Shown here piece by piece: positions 54,419-64,000 of a DNA stretch of 64,000 bases. Source of the stretch: Lepidodermella squamata (taxonomy: Eukaryota; Animalia; Gastrotricha). The DNA lies in contig JBLDXI010000033.1 in the NCBI GenBank assembly GCA_047495785.1, forward strand, positions 248,001 to 312,000, in the 5' to 3' direction. Position numbers and translations under genes: made by a program. Numbering within the stretch: position 1 is the first letter of the stretch; every line of letters begins with the position of its first letter. Under the pieces are notes generated by a model, which saw only the letters and a program-made list of their open reading frames with translations, was not told the origin of the DNA and ran no database searches.

Positions 54419-55592
54419 TCAAGGTACCATATTCCGTTCTCTAAGATAGCCAATCACGCGCATTATGTCCACAGTGAATCCTGGCCTCAAACTTTGAATT
54501 ATCGGCGCGATGGCTGTTTCAGCCGAAAATATTAGATAGCTCGCCTTATGAACAGTAGCTGACAAGTAGTATGGCCCTGCGCCGTCCCATGCCGTAATGA
54601 GAGCTATAGAGATGAACAGCGGAATGTGAGATAGCGCAAAAGCAAAAAAGGATGCCAAGGATTGCTTCATGTAGAAAACTTCTCGCTTTTGCCAATTTGT
54701 CAGCAGGGTTGTAGGTTGTTTCTTCGACCTTTTACGCCCACCCGATGAGATAAGATCCTGATTTATAAACTTGCTCTTCACATCTCGCAACTTTTCGAAA
54801 ATCTTCCTGGAATAGAAGAAAATTCCGTAATTTCAAATTCAATAAAATTCGCAAACCAGTAATTGTATGCTATCAACGAGCAAGGTATGATCATTGCAGC
54901 CAAAGCGTAGTACAGCAGTAATAGAAATTGAGTATCAATACTGCCCCATAATTTATGGTCGAAATTGCCGCAAAACAATACAGCAGATCCGTTGTTAACC
55001 CCAGGTAACACAACATATTCCGCCGTCATAGCGTCGAAAGGGTAAATTGAAGTTGTCTCAAAAATAACGAAACCTATTGCGAGGAAACTCAGGGCAAGAA
55101 AAACTACCCGTTTCGTGTTCGCAGGTGGGTTAGGATTATTACAGGTCAAGCAGAGCCGCCTTTCGTAACTTATCAACATGAAAATCCAAGAATTCTGACA
55201 TCCAAGAGCTGTAGCTATCCAGCATATCCCTTGGCATAGGAACTCAGGACCTTCCCAGAAACCTGTCCTCACTGGTACCCAAATGAGAATCGGAAGGAAT
55301 ATGCTTTGGACGACTGTAGATACTGCGTTCATCACAGTGAGAATAAAAAAATCGCGGCGCGCAGTTGTCGCTTCGAGAATATGAACACCATACCGGTATT
55401 AGTGATGATTGCCAGAACTGTGACCGTAAGATATATTATCGGAAATGTAAGTCGCTGCTGAAGGGTTGTAGCGTCCAAGTTATGGAACCAGCCGATGAAG
55501 TAAGGACGAGGTTCAGGGTAGCCTCGTCTCGGACTGGCATGCATCACCCAAGATCCGTAGAGAAAACCGGCTGCTGTAGACGAGTTGTTCAT
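54419..55592 (-). pseudogene. Orphan class-A GPCR 3 with a +2 frameshift (pseudogene or assembly error)
   Basis: At ~55357 the sequence ctg cgc GC cgc gat breaks LRRDFFIL, which is conserved in the paralogues. The rest is intact. Confidence 0.75.
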
Positions 55593-56148
55593 CCGAGTAT
55601 TGAGATCAAAATGTCTTCGAGAGAGTTAGAAAGAGTCAAATCCTCTCTAACGCGTTCCTCGAAAGTCTGGAATTGCTAATTGGAAAATGCGGAGGTTAGC
55701 GTGAAGAAAATCGATCTTGGGTATGGCTAATCAGCAAACTGTAATGCAATTGACGAAAATTAGGATCTGGGAACACGTTGTTAGCGTAGTTGAAGTTCTC
55801 TCAAAAACAATCTAAGCTCACGTAATATTATGCCGAAGAAGCCCACAATAGAAAAATATGTGGCCGCGCATGAAAAGTATTCCCTGCGATGACAGAATTT
55901 GGGGCAGGTAGTTTTGACCTCAGGAAGCCTAAAATAGCCAACGACACGAGTTCCTTCATTGCGTTATCAGAATCATTCAACTTGGAAGTATCCTCAAAAT
56001 CTCGTGATTTTTACAGTTGTCATTTTTCCTAATTTTTCTGACAAGAGGAAGACAAAATTGACGCAAAATCATTTTTATTTCAGTTATAATTTATACTCTA
56101 TTGAGATTGAAATGAGATTGACAAAGAATTGTAAAACACAAGCATAAG

Positions 56149-59100
56149 TCAAAAACTTGTCTCTACGCAATTTGGAAATGGCACCATGTACTTCACGCCT
56201 TTGTACTTCATACAAACAGCTGGGGCGATTATTTGTTCGAGTTTGATGAAGATAAATTCGCCATTGTCGGTAGCTGTTGAATCGACTTTATGAACTTGCA
56301 CTCCTCGGAACAGTTTTCCCGTGAACTTCAAAGCTTTCACATAGGTTTTATCTTGATAGCAGATCAGATACTTCACCTTCGCAAAGGTTTTCGGACCAAT
56401 TTGCAGATAATCTCCAGCGGCAATGCTGATTTTCTTGGCCATGACATTGCAAATACCACGAGTCCATTTTCTTAACACCACTTTTTCATCAATCATCAAA
56501 CTCAAATCCCGGTAAAGATAGTAAGACGAGTAAGTGTTGACAACCGCCTCAGCACCGAGCCCGATCAACTTGGCATTTGAAGACTTGACGACGGTGCCAA
56601 CATGGCGATAGCCATTAGACAAAAGCTGTAGAGCCCATTCCGGAGGGTCTTTCGCAGAAATCAGTAGTTCCATTAGCAACACACGGTCAACACTTTGGAC
56701 CACAACTCCGTTGCCACTGGTAAGGTACCGAACGAGTTGACCGGCCTTGCTCTCGAACCCAAAGGTGCTATACTTGAACAATGGCCCGAAATTTTCAACG
56801 TCCTCGTGCATGTGTTCCGCTTGGTGGACATTCAGCGTACATCGTTCTTCGCCATGAAGAATCGGAAAATCGTGAACGAAGTTTGACATGGAAATTTCGA
56901 CAAAGTTGGCATCGGGATTTGGCTTCAACGCTTCGTACAGCCCAGCAGAAAAATCCATAAAATGCTTGTAAACCTGAGGTTTCAATACATCTTGGAACAA
57001 CACGGGTCCAAAAAACAGAATCATTGCGCGATTTTCGTTGCCGTGAAACATTCCGCGTTGAGCCAGTGATCGGTAGTTTCGCTGATAGCACGAAGGCATG
57101 TTGACTTTGAAGCTTTTTTCAGCTTCTAGAACCTTGGATTCGCCGACATAGCAAGCTTCGATTGATGTATTGTCGAAGTAACTTGCGAACAGGACTCGGA
57201 GAATGCATGAGCACGAGTTGTGAAGGTAGTCGAATGGGAATCTCCAGACCAGGTCAAGGATCTCAGCGATAATTGCCGGGCCATGAACTCCATGATATGG
57301 CACCTTCTTTGTTCCTATCAGCGCATCTGCAATCATCATTTCATGAGTTCGAAGAAGAACGTCAGGTTCGGGTGCGAAGTAGACGGTTGTGCTGTTTTCG
57401 CGCAACTGACCGCAGATGAGGCACCTTGGACAACTGAAGTAACCTAGATAAAAAGAAAATTTCTTCCATCAGAAAAAATAAATGAAAAAATCGGATATAT
57501 ATTGGAAAGAATTAATCGACGAAATATTGGACAATTGTTATTTGTTATGCACGTTTCTAAATTTTTCAAACTTATCAAAACAAATAAACAGCTAATTTGT
57601 ATGATTTTAGAAAATATTCAGCATTAGTAATCCACCGGCAATCGGCTAAAACCAACGTACTTTTTTATGGTTTTATTGCTCCCTGACTACACTATATAGC
57701 ATCAATTAGTACGTGAAAAATCTGTTTGAAAAAATTAAATCAAAAGCACCAAATTAATATGCAAATAAATTGAAAAATAATAGGATGGATATTAAAAATC
57801 AGGAATGATTTACCGTATTTATGCCAACCTTATTCGCTAATTGCTTATCCCTAATAGGAGCCCAGGGTTGAGAAGTCAAGTTGGTTCGAAAACGTTGAAA
57901 ATAAATGATTTACCAAAAATCATGTGTCGATAGGCGAAATTAAAAAAATTTCATGGTTGAAATTTTAGTGGCCCGCGCTGCTATAGGAAAACATTAGGTA
58001 GAAATAATGAATTGGAAATTATTTACTGGGCAAGTATTTAAAACAATTTTATCGATTAACAGATAATGCGCCACCGTTAAATAATTTTTCTTTGAATTGT
58101 AATAGTAAGGTCATCTTTTTTCATATGCAAATGAGATTTTTCAAATTACCTGTTATTTTTCCAGCTTCATTCAAAAAATTTTAAATCACATAAAATCAGG
58201 TGGAAAAAAAACGAAATCACCCGCGTTTAATTGTCATAATTTTCAGAATTTGTTATGTTTCTCTATCCTCAAAAAACATGGTTTGACCGAAATAACAGTA
58301 TTGAAATTTTTACAAAAAATTCACTATAAAATCTCAAACCTGTGGGATAGGCAGAGTTTCGAATTTCCGCCTTTGCCGGACCGTCAACACAGCACAACGG
58401 ACATTGAATCCACGCCACTCTATTGCCGCAATCAAGACCTTTGTTCAACATTTGTTTGATTTCGTTTACAAACGGTCGCAAAACCTGGTTTGCATCAGGG
58501 TGTCCAAAACCCTGGTATATACCAGCCAAGAAATACTGATTGAGCTGATCGAGGCGAAATAGAATATACCAGACACTTCGAATTGCAGATAAATATGGTG
58601 ATACGCCGTCGTAAAAAAAGCTGGTTTCGACTGGTTCGACAACCTCAGGGTGGTTTTTCAGAGCCGTGACAATGCGATCGCTCAGCCCGATGCTCGCGAA
58701 CGATCCGCCCGATTTACATTTCGGACAGCGGCGCCTCATAGCCTTAGAGTTCAGTTTTCGCGGAACCGAATTCTTACATCCACAAATGTAGACTGTTTCG
58801 ACACCCCGCCCGTTTCGATACCAGGGCAGTAGGCGCGATTTTAATTTATGTTTGGTGTTAATTTGAGGAAAGAAATCAGCTCCAGGAAACAACTGCATGA
58901 AAATATCCATTAGAGTTTCCATAGCCACCCAGGATAGTTTGAACCGATTACAATATGCCACCAACATGAATAGCAATGAGCCGAAAGTAATAGAATCGCT
59001 CAATCCGTGAACTACTTCGTCTTTGTGAGGTAAATTGAAGGGGCAAGGGTCTTCTTCCGTATTAGCATCATCGGTAACCAAATCCTCCATACCTGGGTCG

Positions 59101-59348
59101 CAATAGTCATTTGGATCATTGGAATTACCGCCAAGAGTTTCATTATTATTTCCAGAAAATTCGTAATCTTCTTCAACAATTTCCATGTCGTTGTTTGTTG
59201 AGGTGAATTCAGATTCGATTTCGAGCTCACGTTCATCCTCATCTTTTGTTTCTTCCGGAATTGTTTCAAGCAGCAACTGACGACCAGTACGCCAACCTTG
59301 CCGGGTTGTCCGAGGTAGCACTTTTGCCCAGCGGCTTTTGTATCTCAT
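56149..59348 (-). CDS. CMC-EnSpm (CACTA-type) DDE transposase, apparently intact, 2 exons (59348-58340, 57443-56149; 767 aa)
   Basis: Zn-ribbon YICGC..CPKC, FYDGVSPY (D1), VDGPAKA..G|YFSCPRC (D2 and CxxC across an in-frame splice), PFDYLH, NVHQAEH and GPLFKYSTFGFES (E). Confidence 0.9.
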
Positions 59349-60431
59349 GAGTCAGAATGAAAATTATTCTATGAAGAACTTTTGACAATTATTCATCGCG
59401 AAAAAATATGAAAATAAAACCAGAAAATTCCTTGAATATTTCTTAATTTTGAAACAAGATAATTCAAGCCTTTTATAGTTTTTAGTTATCAATCTGGAAA
59501 TAAATTTTATAATAAAAAAATTGTGATTGAAAATGATTAAAAAGTGAACCAAATGACAATGAAAGTGATAGAAATCCGATTTGGGATCACCAGGGTTAAT
59601 TTTATTGGTTGGAAATGTTAATCACCGACGTTTCGATGGTAAAGCATCGCCGTCAGGACTTAGAAATCTAAGAAATCGACTTAGAATTCGAAATTCGATT
59701 TCTAAAAAATTCGAAATTTTTTTAAAATTCGAAATAAATTCGAATAATATAATATGGGAGGGACAAAGACATTCTGAAAAATATTCAAATAATCCCTGTT
59801 ATTATATGATAGAAAAGGAAGAAGAAATAATCGCATTTAACTTTATTATGAAAAAAGTGAAGCAAAGGGAAATTCTAAAGTTCCTTAAAATGTTGTGGGT
59901 TCCAACGTTGATAAAAATTGGATTTTTTAGGAAACTCTAAAAATCTTTAAAGAGCAATATTTGAAAGGAATTAACTGCAAGTCTGTGTGCCAAAAAAGTA
60001 TTGGCGATCAGAGATCAGCGGCTGGATCAGCGGCTTTTCTTACCAGATAAGTAGGAAAAAATAGGAGCTTTCGCAAAAAATAGGGAAAAATCTGTTTTTG
60101 ATTTCTGTGTCCGCAAAGCAAGTATTCCCAGCTGTGTTGCGATTGCTTTTCGTCTGTTGCGCAAATAATTGCCCATTGTGAATTTCATACACACAAGCAG
60201 ACAACCTGATTTACATTTCGCATTTTTTGTTTTTCGTGAGTTTTTTATTTTCCGGGACGAATCAGAATAGTGCGTGCAACCATCGAGTCTTTTAGTTTAT
60301 TGCTCTTCAGATGTTAATTAATAGCGACTTTGCGGCCACCTAGTGGCCATCGTCAGGCTCAGAAATTTATTAGATCGATCGCAGATTTTTCCAATTTTTT
60401 GCTCTGATTTTTGCTTTTATTTTTGCTAGAC

Positions 60432-62696
60432 ATGTCAAGTATCAAAAAAGTCCTTGTTACGTGGCTGGACTGTGACGGCCAGCAAACGTTAATGTCTCCT
60501 GACAAAGTTCGGACGCGTGACGAACCGATAGAACAAGGCAAAACCTACCTCGTCAACTGGCCTGAGGATAACAAAGATTATCGTGGAAGAATCGACGCTA
60601 TCGGTTCTAGATTTTAAACAATAATAATCCATGCGTGTTAACTATCATTTTTGTAGCACTGTCATCAGGCGAAGTCAAAGAATTGGAGCGACGTCTGAAC
60701 CTCGACCAGGAGGATTGCGAATCGATCGCATCTTCTGTTGATTCGACAACCAGGTCAGGACGGTCTTACGCCCAGCCAACAGAATCTTCTGCTGGCAATA
60801 CAGGAAGAAAGGTAACTCTCTGCCGAAATAATTCCTAAAACTTCCCAAATTCCCACGATTTTTTTTATTTTTAGCGTAAAGAGGTAGCAAGCACAGCTGC
60901 TAGCACAGCTTCGAAATATGCGAGGACCAACATGCAAACGACCCCGGAACCCGCTATGACTCCGGCCAGTTCGCAGGTAAGGCTCAGAAACCCATTCGAT
61001 TTTATGCTGAATCTACGGTCAAATCAAAGAGTGCTGGATTTGGGATTTTTAAGGTTGAATATTTTTTGGAATTTTTAGAAAAAAAACTATAAATTTTCGA
61101 TAAATTTTCATCATATTCTGGAAATACACAAAGAAAATTTGTTATAAATAAAAAGTAGAAAAAATTGCTTCAAAGTAAGAAATTTAATACCTTGGTTATT
61201 TCGTTCTATAATACTCTATATATTTTTCCATTCCAGCGGAAAGAAATATCAGGCCAGTCAAATCGCGCCGGAGCTTCCACCAGCTCACAGGTATTATTCT
61301 TCTTTATTTCCCACCAGTTCCTAAGAAAAATTACCTCCCCTCGATTTTTCAAACTGTTTATTTTTATTTTTTTATTTACGCAGGATCACATTTCTTCTTC
61401 AAACAAGTCTTACAGTAATGGACATCAACATCCAAGTGAAGGCTCTGACGAACATGAAGATCCGGTAAGTCGCAATTTGCTTGCATTATTAAAATATTCG
61501 ATCTGATCATGTTATTTATAAATTCAATTTTTCGAAAATGTTTACTTTTTCATCTAACTATAGAACTGAATTTGTTGCAGGATTTACAGCAGTTCAACAT
61601 TGCCGCACAAAGACCAGGTTCGGTAATCATTCGCGAAGCTCCCGGTGGTTCAAGGGCTTCCGGTGGACCCACTCGCGGTGCCCGCGGTGGTGCTCCAGGT
61701 GGTTCCGTGCAAGCTACTGTTGCCGTAACCGGTATCGAGTCCGCAGAACCGGGGCCATCCGGACTAGGTGTCCGGGGTGGTAGTTCGAATAGCCGTGGCG
61801 GCCGTGGCGGTGGTCGAGTTGGTCGAGTTGGTCGAGGAGCCGTACGGGGAACCGGCCGCGGCGCCGTCGTTCAAAACCATCAGTATCCCTACAACAGTGG
61901 CGAGGAGAACTCATTTGATGAAAAGATCGCCGCTCTCCGATTCCGGCTGGATAACCTGAATAAAGACACACGCGAAATTTTGGAGATTTTGAAGATATTC
62001 AGAAGTTCGCCAAAATTTGTCACGGTTTTTGTGAGTTTACAATCACTTCAAGCTCCTTCAATATTTGTAAAAAAAATTCAATTTTTTATTATGATCTTGA
62101 ATTTTTCGCTTTTTCACCAGAACTTTGCGAAAATTATATAAAATTTTATTTTGAAGGAAAAATAAAATAAAATAAAATTATTAATGATGTCTATTTTTCT
62201 CAATTTTAATATATTTCGCAAAGTTGATTTATTTTTTTATATTTTTAATTTCGTTTTAGGAGAACTTCGAGTTTTCTGATGGATCAATCTTTGAGGGCAA
62301 ATCCGCACTGGAATTCCAGCGTTATAACGATCATGTTCGAGGCGCGGCTGATCTGGCAATCGCCTTGCTGCAGCTGCTGTTCGATCCAGAAGAGTTGAGA
62401 ACAAGAAATCTCAGTGGTCATGATGCCCTCCATGGAAAGACAGTCTTTCCGGAAAAGCAGCTGGACCCAATGAGGCTCGGCGAAATCCACCGTGAGTTCT
62501 GTTAATTTTTCTTTTGTTTTAGCCTAAAAATATAAAATATGGGTTCCAAAAATTAACGCAGGATGTTTTTTTAGGAGTCGTCGATCATTGTTTTCCACTT
62601 TTGACCCTGAGTGAAAGACAAAAAGTTTGGCACGTGAAAGTTGCCAACTGGCTTCGCTCCAACAACAACGGTAATAATCACAACGATGACGCGTAA
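60432..62696 (+). CDS. BEN-domain protein with N-terminal Tudor/SH3-like module, RGG-rich segment and coiled coil; 8 exons, 455 aa; probable transposon accessory gene
   Basis: Exons 60432-60603, 60657-60811, 60875-60976, 61237-61290, 61384-61464, 61581-62030, 62260-62491 and 62575-62696 splice in frame. The C-terminus LAIALLQLLFDPEELRTRNLSG...KQLDPMRLGEIH...VANWLR fits the BEN pattern. Confidence 0.8.
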
Positions 62697-62740
62697 TCGA
62701 TTTTGAACATTTACATTTCTGAAATCCTGACTTACATATT

Positions 62741-62813
62741 ATATATATATATATATATATAACAAATGTAAATCGTATGCTAAAGTTGAATATATCAATG
62801 TATATATATATAT
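62741..62813. repeat. (TA)n microsatellites in the 3' UTR of the BEN gene
   Basis: Two TA runs directly before AATAAA at ~62815. Confidence 0.8.
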
Positions 62814-64000
62814 CAATAAAATGTAATATTAAATGCTGTTCTTATTCTTCCATATAGATTGATTGGAATGTTAATGTTATTCCATTGAAATTGAGCCTTA
62901 AATGGGTCGTGATGTTGGGTAAGTTGTCTTTTATGTTTAATGCATGGAATGATTTTTTTCCTAATTGTTTTGCCGTAAGCCAAGTGGTATGCATTACGGT
63001 TTAGTAAATATTAATTTTCAATTTAGATTTCACAGAATCGGTCGAATCCGTCCGATTAAGATCCAGGTACAACTTCGCCGCAAAGTAAAAATTTGCGAGA
63101 ATTTTATATTTTTACAACAGCGTTGAGCTGCCATGCAGTAACGTGAACACAAGGCGAACTCGTTTTCTCTGCTGGGCCATGATTTACAAATTGAAGTAAG
63201 TCGATGCTCAAAACATGTTGAAATCCTCCATTAAAATTCTGCGATTTTAACTAAATTTTACAATTATTCAAATTACAGGGAAATTTGAAAGGGACTTCGA
63301 AAAATTCTTGGAATTTTTTTACAAATAATTTGAAATTTAAAAGTCTTCAATATTTTTAATATTTTCTCATCCAAATTTAGCTTTTTCAAATTAAAAAAAA
63401 AATGAAAAATCGAAGAAGAAATGATTTCTTATTCTCTCTTCGCTTCTCTTTATTTGAAAATTCACTCGAATTTTTTCGGTTTATTAGATTGGCTCGGTGA
63501 ATGGCTGGATTGGCTTCTAGCAATGGAGCGATGCGGATTTGGTTACCAAGCAGCTCAGGGCTTCGGTTCTGAAACAACGTTTTACCACAACGGCAATCAG
63601 CGGCCAGCCGGAGCAAGTACAACAGGCTTTGATGCCTAACAAATGACTGTTGCTATTATTCGCCTTCTCATGTTATAAAAAATAACACATTTAAATATCG
63701 TTTGATTGATGAAATAAAAATTATTATGTGGATTTAATGTCTCATTTCGGGTCTAAAGTGGCGAAGAAAAGCAGCGAGCGGAAAGGAAGGAGAGGGCCTT
63801 TAATAGCCTATTTAAATGAATAATGAACCTTCAGTTTAGGCTATATTAGACGTTAATTTTGCGCATTTTCCAACGGAAAAGCTGAAACTCTAACTTAGCC
63901 TAACATGGCAGTTGCGAACCTCCAGAATGGCCTAACTTTGGCGCTAATGTAATATTTATTTTCATAATTCTTTATCTAAAGCCTAAAATAGGCTAAATTC

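Follow-up and report, generated by a model that had tools for sequence, protein, structure and literature searches.

Near the right edge of the 64,000-nucleotide stretch of the gastrotrich Lepidodermella squamata analysed here (the window, C33:248001-312000), two predicted genes lie head to head: a transposase gene on the minus strand and, on the plus strand, a second gene whose protein ends in a domain resembling the BEN domain (hereafter the helper gene). We describe the two genes, the evidence that they travel together as one DNA transposon, and the role that the second protein may play in it. The host genome assembly comprises 121 Mb in 151 contigs, and the window has short introns and a GC content of ~42%. 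All database, family and structure searches were run on single exons; the joined, spliced proteins were used for open reading frame (ORF) checks and local alignment alone.

The transposase gene has two exons. Exon 1 (58340-59348, minus strand) begins with an ATG at 59348 and encodes a Cys-rich N-terminal stretch together with residues D247 and D322. A GT...AG intron of 896 bp (57444-58339) separates it from exon 2 (56149-57443; coding 57443-56152, stop codon 56151-56149), which contributes the CxxC motif at residues 341-344, the HxxxH motif at 543-547 and E567. A script translation of the joined coding sequence gave 767 codons and one terminal stop, in agreement with the earlier note on this DNA, which had described an intact, spliced minus-strand transposase of 767 amino acids with all its catalytic motifs. 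The motifs are indeed complete; when the window transposase was aligned with four paralogues and five database homologues, D247, D322, C341-x2-C344, H543-x3-H547 and E567 all fell in columns conserved across these sequences. This corresponds to the D-D-C(2)C-H(3-4)H-E motif set described for EnSpm, Mirage, Chapaev and Transib (PMC12730594), and hence to that of the CMC (CACTA/Mirage/Chapaev) group.

A full HMMER pass over 1.84 billion representatives returned 5,131 relatives of the transposase (E<=0.001). The nearest of these are ~30% identical to it, except for one fragment of 215 amino acids at 48%; where named, they are tick and springtail sequences, and a damselfly homologue was also found. 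Relatives of exon 2, at E-values of 1e-22 to 1e-30, carry the Pfam domains Transposase_21 (tnp2), DUF4218 and DUF1258, some of them above the curated cut-off (homologue P0012, for example, scores 40.6 bits for Transposase_21, where the cut-off is 28.6). A 758-amino-acid paralogue from the same genome matches Transposase_21 and DUF4218 weakly, and a word-index protein search gave five matches with this paralogue and none with exon 2, under a length filter that full-length relatives exceed. Between the window transposase and that of a near-identical sister copy (at ~0.56 Mb on contig C4), the ratio of nonsynonymous to synonymous differences (pN/pS) is 0.20. Judged by its sequence, the protein is a DDE enzyme of the CMC group, and its link to the Pfam families is indirect, via its relatives.

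The plus-strand helper gene starts at 60432, and the 1,083-bp spacer that separates its start codon from the divergent ATG of the transposase (59349-60431) is a candidate bidirectional promoter. As proposed earlier for a divergent gene ~1.1 kb away, it consists of eight exons, all with GT-AG borders, that together give an open frame of 455 amino acids. Exon 1 (60432-60603) encodes a small beta-rich N-terminal module, read from the ORF translation and a low-confidence AlphaFold2 (AF2) model. Exons 2-5 (60657-60811, 60875-60976, 61237-61290 and 61384-61464) encode a Ser/Thr-rich linker, delimited by the splice borders and the open frame. They are followed by exon 6 (61581-62030), in whose translation the RG/RGG repeats reported in the earlier note are visible, ahead of a proposed heptad segment. 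The first two thirds of the BEN-like domain lie in exon 7 (62260-62491), as placed by Pfam, PDB, ESM and AF2, and the remainder of the domain and the stop codon in exon 8 (62575-62696), as read from the translation.

This layout of head, linker and BEN-like domain recurs in the paralogues that were read. Their N-terminal exon is of similar size and aligns at 16-28% identity, a level at which homology is unproven. In the window protein, the single-sequence AF2 model of the N-terminal module has a predicted local distance difference test score (pLDDT) of 56 and contains only two strands; the module had no match in Foldseek, no profile match in PDB and no named cluster in the ESM Atlas.

The C-terminal domain of the helper likely has a BEN-type fold, a conclusion on which four individually weak lines of evidence agree. 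The Pfam BEN profile (PF10523) matches exon 7 at 17.2 bits (E 0.006) over profile positions 1-45 of 76. When exon 7 was compared with PDB sequences, the matches were BANP BEN domains alone, at E-values of ~0.6. Among the 30 nearest named clusters in the ESM Atlas, 19 were BEN (score 0.95, recognition 2516). Lastly, an AF2 model of exon 7, which was built from a 12-row family alignment and covers about two thirds of the domain, reached a pLDDT of 80-91 for residues 30-77. Its Foldseek ranks 1-11 are all BEN domains, from BANP, BEND3, Insv, Bsg25A and BEND6 (probability up to 0.99), and 11 of 11 among the matches listed by VIA are BEN domains as well (Z 3.4-4.8, 55-65 aligned residues). For BANP, the Foldseek probability is 0.99, with 34% identity over 61 columns.

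The BEN-like domain also appears to share its gene structure across the family. All members examined lose their open frame at one and the same position within the domain, directly behind a conserved I-x-G, consistent with an intron at that site throughout. We also looked for an intron-free copy; among all loci read, the frame breaks at that point.

To locate BEN-like loci, a profile of the BEN-like exon was searched over the whole genome, and the matches were compared with the coordinates of the transposase matches. At 10 of 15 transposase loci, a BEN-like exon lies 2.0-3.4 kb from the 5' end of the transposase, and the two are divergent in every case (C33, C4:0.56M, C4:2.84M, C21:1.42M, C19:2.92M, C32:0.10M, C15:0.52M, C60:0.07M, C19:0.31M and C4:1.96M). 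Beyond the sister copy, the transposases of the paired loci are only 24-55% identical to that of the window, indicating that the pairing is old. The loci at C19:0.31M and C60, which belong to another family, have an identical spacing of 1,993 bp. The 55%-diverged copy (at C4:2.84 Mb) keeps the head-to-head order, and its second gene again encodes a beta-rich head, followed by a linker rich in RG and a helical stretch, with the BEN-like part in its last exons. With ~15-28 transposase loci in 121 Mb, the probability of one chance BEN match within 3 kb is ~0.001, and hence chance cannot explain ten pairs. This evidence on pairing covers the genome of L. squamata alone.

Sequence comparison thus gives good support to the view that both genes form one mobile unit. 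The earlier note had assigned them to a single element, and the pair is in fact repeated at 97-99% identity on another contig, between unrelated flanks and with inverted ends and a 2-bp target duplication. The contrary case that it had raised, in which other transposase copies never carry the BEN gene, fails given the ten loci that do. A domesticated pair of host genes was considered and rejected: the pair is multi-copy, with terminal inverted repeats (TIRs), a target duplication and differing flanks.

Comparison with the sister copy also sets the extent of the element. Window positions 55922-64140 match C4:557777-568956 at 93-99% identity, while the flanks are unrelated. Hence the unit starts 227 bp to the left of where the earlier note had begun it and ends 140 bp beyond the window; the copy occupies 55922-64000 of the window and continues for those 140 bp to its true right terminus, CGACAGGG. 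The right end proposed earlier, a GCTGGG at 63176, had to be discarded, as the homology with the sister copy runs on to 64140 and the site is internal.

Aligning further copies, as had been suggested, yielded the ends CCCTGTCG...CGACAGGG, their inverted repeat and the 2-bp duplication, with the sister copy and two 2.6-kb derivatives (one on C13, the other on C61) serving to define them. The sister copy starts with CCCTGTCG at C4:554466, ends with CGACAGGG at 568956 and is flanked by TA on both sides. The C13 and C61 derivatives each have a TT duplication. Between the two ends, 8/8 terminal bases are perfectly inverted, followed by 11/12 and, with gaps, ~28/42, giving a looser inverted repeat of ~40 bp. 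These derivatives also show that C4:554609-557614 is a nested insert in the sister copy, and the canonical element thus measures ~8.5 kb. In the Repbase and Yuan-Wessler classification, Mirage is reportedly the branch with a 2-bp duplication. On this feature of its insertion sites, the element is Mirage-like within CMC.

Near both ends, the element carries clusters of a short repeat, TAGGCT/AGCCTA. Eight occurrences fall in the last 340 bp, and at the canonical left end the first 310 bp contain six, against a frequency in the window of ~1 per 2.4 kb. The right subterminal cluster lies at 63805-64000, with five occurrences in the window and three more in the next 140 bp. The ends are also found on shorter, non-autonomous derivatives of 2.6 kb (C13:1524037-1526624, C61:113353-115896 and C73:215951-218535; the first two were read and have the same termini as the sister copy, while the third is known from its coordinates alone). 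Compared with the autonomous family, the left 143 bp of these derivatives is 96-99% identical and the right 1.1 kb 75-83%, implying that the two ends have different histories.

The window copy is the only one in which both genes are open. Compared with the canonical element, its left 305 bp are missing, inverted repeat included, which explains why no convincing left TIR had been seen in the earlier note. The element had also been proposed there to be autonomous, which is not supported for the window copy: its genes are open, but without a left end it cannot move by itself. Its surroundings are equally unusual. A host segment of 561 bp stands directly to the left of the element (55361-55921) and again directly to its right (window-equivalent 64141-64701, C33:312141-312701), the two being identical at 561/561 positions by blastn. 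At the left junction, the bases AGGAAGC (55922-55928) can be assigned both to the truncated element and to the host DNA on the far side of the segment. The right junction falls exactly at the terminus, with no 2-bp duplication but with the 561-bp flanking repeat instead. An insertion into staggered cuts 561 bp apart would leave such an arrangement, with one end made by the transposase and the other a broken end joined through microhomology. Most likely, the window copy arose by an abortive or one-ended integration that was completed by host end-joining and fill-in. If so, it offers a clean natural example of such an event, with an exact terminus, a microhomology join and a 561-bp host duplication. 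An RNA-mediated retro-copy was also considered as the origin of the truncated copy and rejected, as the introns of both genes are kept and the intact end is a DNA terminus.

The duplicated host segment consists of the first 232 coding nucleotides of exon 1 of a gene for a seven-transmembrane (7TM) receptor and 329 bp upstream of it. This rhodopsin-type receptor gene (54778-55592, minus strand) lies directly to the left of the element, with a faint Pfam 7tm_1 match on its second exon. The duplicate of its promoter region now reads into the right end of the transposon.

The window copy and the sister copy have not diverged evenly: they differ by 2.6-7% over 56514-57936, the 3' half of the transposase, but by 1-2% over the rest (57975-64140), helper gene included, a pattern that suggests recombination or conversion between copies. 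Both ends are present in the sister copy, yet a 2,185-bp insert splits its transposase, and its helper gene has a frameshift at codon 210 (exon 6) and a 504-bp miniature inverted-repeat transposable element (MITE) in intron 5. The 55%-diverged copy is interrupted by a stop codon in exon 1 of its transposase and, apparently, by a frame break in exon 1 of its helper gene. Among the family copies read, we found none that is fully autonomous, with both ends and an open transposase.

The inserts in the sister copy are themselves mobile sequences of several kinds. The 2,185-bp unit (C4:558683-560867) contains a Helitron-like Pif1-helicase fragment (Pfam Pif1_2B, E 3e-20) and is present in four copies at 99-100% identity; in transposase exon 2 it is flanked by 318-bp direct target repeats, a second case in this genome of an insertion with a very long flanking duplication. 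The nested insert at C4:554609-557614, ~3 kb in the left subterminal region, has inverted repeats of ~118 bp (81% identical) and ORFs with a MULE transposase domain (E 4e-13). The MITE-like insert in helper intron 5 (C4:565824-566327) has perfect 26-bp inverted ends.

About seven BEN-like exons stand alone, with no transposase match detected nearby (among them C46:693550-693729, C13:2126758-2126925, C7:2904203-2904433, C17:1011231-1011437, C15:2774306-2774515 and C36:28995-29138). These may be remnants, partners of undetected transposases or copies recruited by the host. The one on C13 adjoins an ORF with Cys/His-rich, retroelement-like motifs.

Taking the locus as a whole, we think it reasonably probable that the region represents a CMC/Mirage-like cut-and-paste transposon of ~8.5 kb with two genes, one of them for a BEN-type helper that binds the ends, and that the window copy is an abnormal insertion of it. 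In the proposed mechanism, the first gene would supply the DDE transposase, and the second a helper in which a flexible basic linker joins a small beta module at the N-terminus to a BEN-type DNA-binding domain at the C-terminus. We infer that this domain may bind the TAGGCT repeats clustered within ~330 bp of each end. The helper could then bring the transposase to the ends or hold it there, by analogy with TnpA for En/Spm and the Myb-like protein for PIF/Harbinger, and perhaps also regulate the spacer between the two genes. Although stranded, the window copy could act in trans, providing both proteins for the 2.6-kb derivatives, which keep both ends.

Several observations weigh against this proposal. 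The transposase exons of the window match nothing in Pfam even at an E-value of 10, including Transposase_21 and DUF4218, and the termini are CCCTG...CAGGG rather than the 5'-CA...TG-3' of CACTA-type elements. Exon 7 stays below the curated cut-off for Pfam BEN (17.2 vs 23.2 bits) and covers half of the profile, a profile reached, weakly, by only 1 of 12 members of the BEN-like family; the BEN domain named in the earlier note stands as a probable fold, in Foldseek and VIA, but misses the Pfam cut-off. The fold match itself covers half a domain at Z below 5, and two profiles of the BEN family (A1 and A2) matched no BEN chain among the PDB sequences. The TAGGCT repeats are only a candidate target of the BEN-type domain, and the Cys-rich N-terminus of the transposase could itself read the element ends. 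The genome-wide profile search found no BEN-like exon at five of the transposase loci. Finally, both gene models are ORF and splice-border predictions from DNA alone, and the 561-bp repeat is known from the assembly alone.

This last point raises the question of whether the flanks of the window copy, with their repeat and missing left end, could be an assembly error, the real locus being an ordinary full insertion or none. Two perfect repeats 8.2 kb apart are a pattern to which mis-joins can lead. However, the truncated junction shows a 7-bp microhomology and the other junction falls exactly at the terminus, as biology rather than a mis-join would predict, and the 2,185-bp insert between 318-bp repeats in the sister copy is a second such case. 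We therefore regard an assembly error as unlikely. The same degree of doubt applies to a different role for the helper, as mainly a repressor or dosage regulator that binds the spacer or the ends and is dispensable for the reaction. Solved BEN proteins do include transcriptional repressors, and at every locus read the divergent genes have a 1.1-kb spacer in common. Yet there is no motif evidence in the spacer, and a required factor would account at least equally well for the long persistence of the gene in many lineages. It is harder still to see the second gene as a passenger that one transposon family took up from the host and that plays no role in the element, although BEN-like exons without a transposase detected nearby (on C46, C13, C7, C17, C15 and C36) would fit. 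At ten loci with transposases only 24-55% identical, the gene keeps the same position, orientation and intron site, and a capture would have to predate all these lineages while the gene nonetheless stayed open; we consider this very improbable.

The earlier note had favoured an anti-silencing function, and the helper might by analogy be a chromatin factor encoded by the transposon, similar to VANC or to TnpA in its derepressing role, that counters heterochromatin or piRNA silencing through RG repeats serving as docking sites for arginine-methyl/Tudor interactions. BEN proteins are known as sequence-specific regulators of chromatin and as insulators. A passage in PMC5704228, for instance, cites a Drosophila BEN repressor. 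The BEN-type fold of the helper is supported, its gene has been kept across old lineages, and RG-rich linkers are found in both the window copy and the 55%-diverged copy. The linker is not conserved beyond these, however: it is RS-rich in the C21 family and neither RG- nor RS-rich in the C32, C19 and C15 families, which weakens the link to arginine-methyl/Tudor/piRNA biology. Similarly, the Tudor-like head is unconfirmed, given its low-confidence model and lack of a fold match. We prefer a plain end-binding helper, as it explains the same facts with fewer assumptions, and rate an anti-silencing factor as rather improbable; a counter-silencing role found no support in this analysis. A broader scenario, which we regard as decidedly doubtful, is that BEN-type proteins are an ancient, standing component of the Mirage-like clade, acting both as end-binders and as insulators or anti-silencing factors. 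In that case, the BEN genes found across animal genomes and in polydnaviruses could plausibly derive from transposons of this kind.

How does an element with an end-binding BEN-type helper compare with known systems? With Mirage and other CMC elements it shares the catalytic motif set, the 2-bp target duplication, the subterminal repeats and relatives bearing Transposase_21, DUF4218 and DUF1258. It differs from them in its CCCTG...CAGGG ends, in the distance of its public relatives (~30% identity) and in its constant, divergent second gene of the BEN type. Transposons with two genes are already known from En/Spm and PIF/Harbinger, and in this sense the class of element is ordinary. The maize En/Spm element likewise encodes a transposase and a separate DNA-binding protein (TnpD and TnpA) and has short repeats clustered by both ends. 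There, TnpA binds the subterminal repeats and brings the transposase to the ends. Unlike the two divergent genes described here, TnpA and TnpD are alternative splice products of a single transcript, TnpA lacks a BEN domain, and the element has CACTA termini and a 3-bp duplication; TnpA serves as a model for the proposed function of the helper, and no sequence relation between the two was seen. PIF/Harbinger elements are also two-gene DNA transposons, in which a small Myb/SANT-like DNA-binding protein recruits the transposase, a system mentioned in a passage of PMC12730594. Their transposase belongs to an unrelated superfamily, and their DNA-binding protein has another fold. The likeness to VANC of the Mutator-like VANDAL elements lies in the idea only, that of an extra transposon gene acting on the chromatin of its own element.

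In the literature searched, nothing links BEN domains to EnSpm, CACTA or Mirage elements (Repbase reports were outside the scope of this search). A BEN-type partner kept beside CMC/Mirage-like transposases that are only ~25% identical would be a new kind of helper. Among BEN proteins, BANP, BEND3, BEND6, Insv and Bsg25A/Elba1 are the best and the only coherent structural matches of exon 7, and the helper has the sequence signature LF-x-EEL...SG...LD in common with them. Those proteins are products of host or viral genes, whereas the domain described here is borne by a transposon, split by an intron and below the Pfam cut-off. BEN domains have so far been studied as host chromatin factors; in the Mirage-like element of L. 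squamata they would gain a transposon context, together with a DNA target that can be guessed, the TAGGCT repeats.

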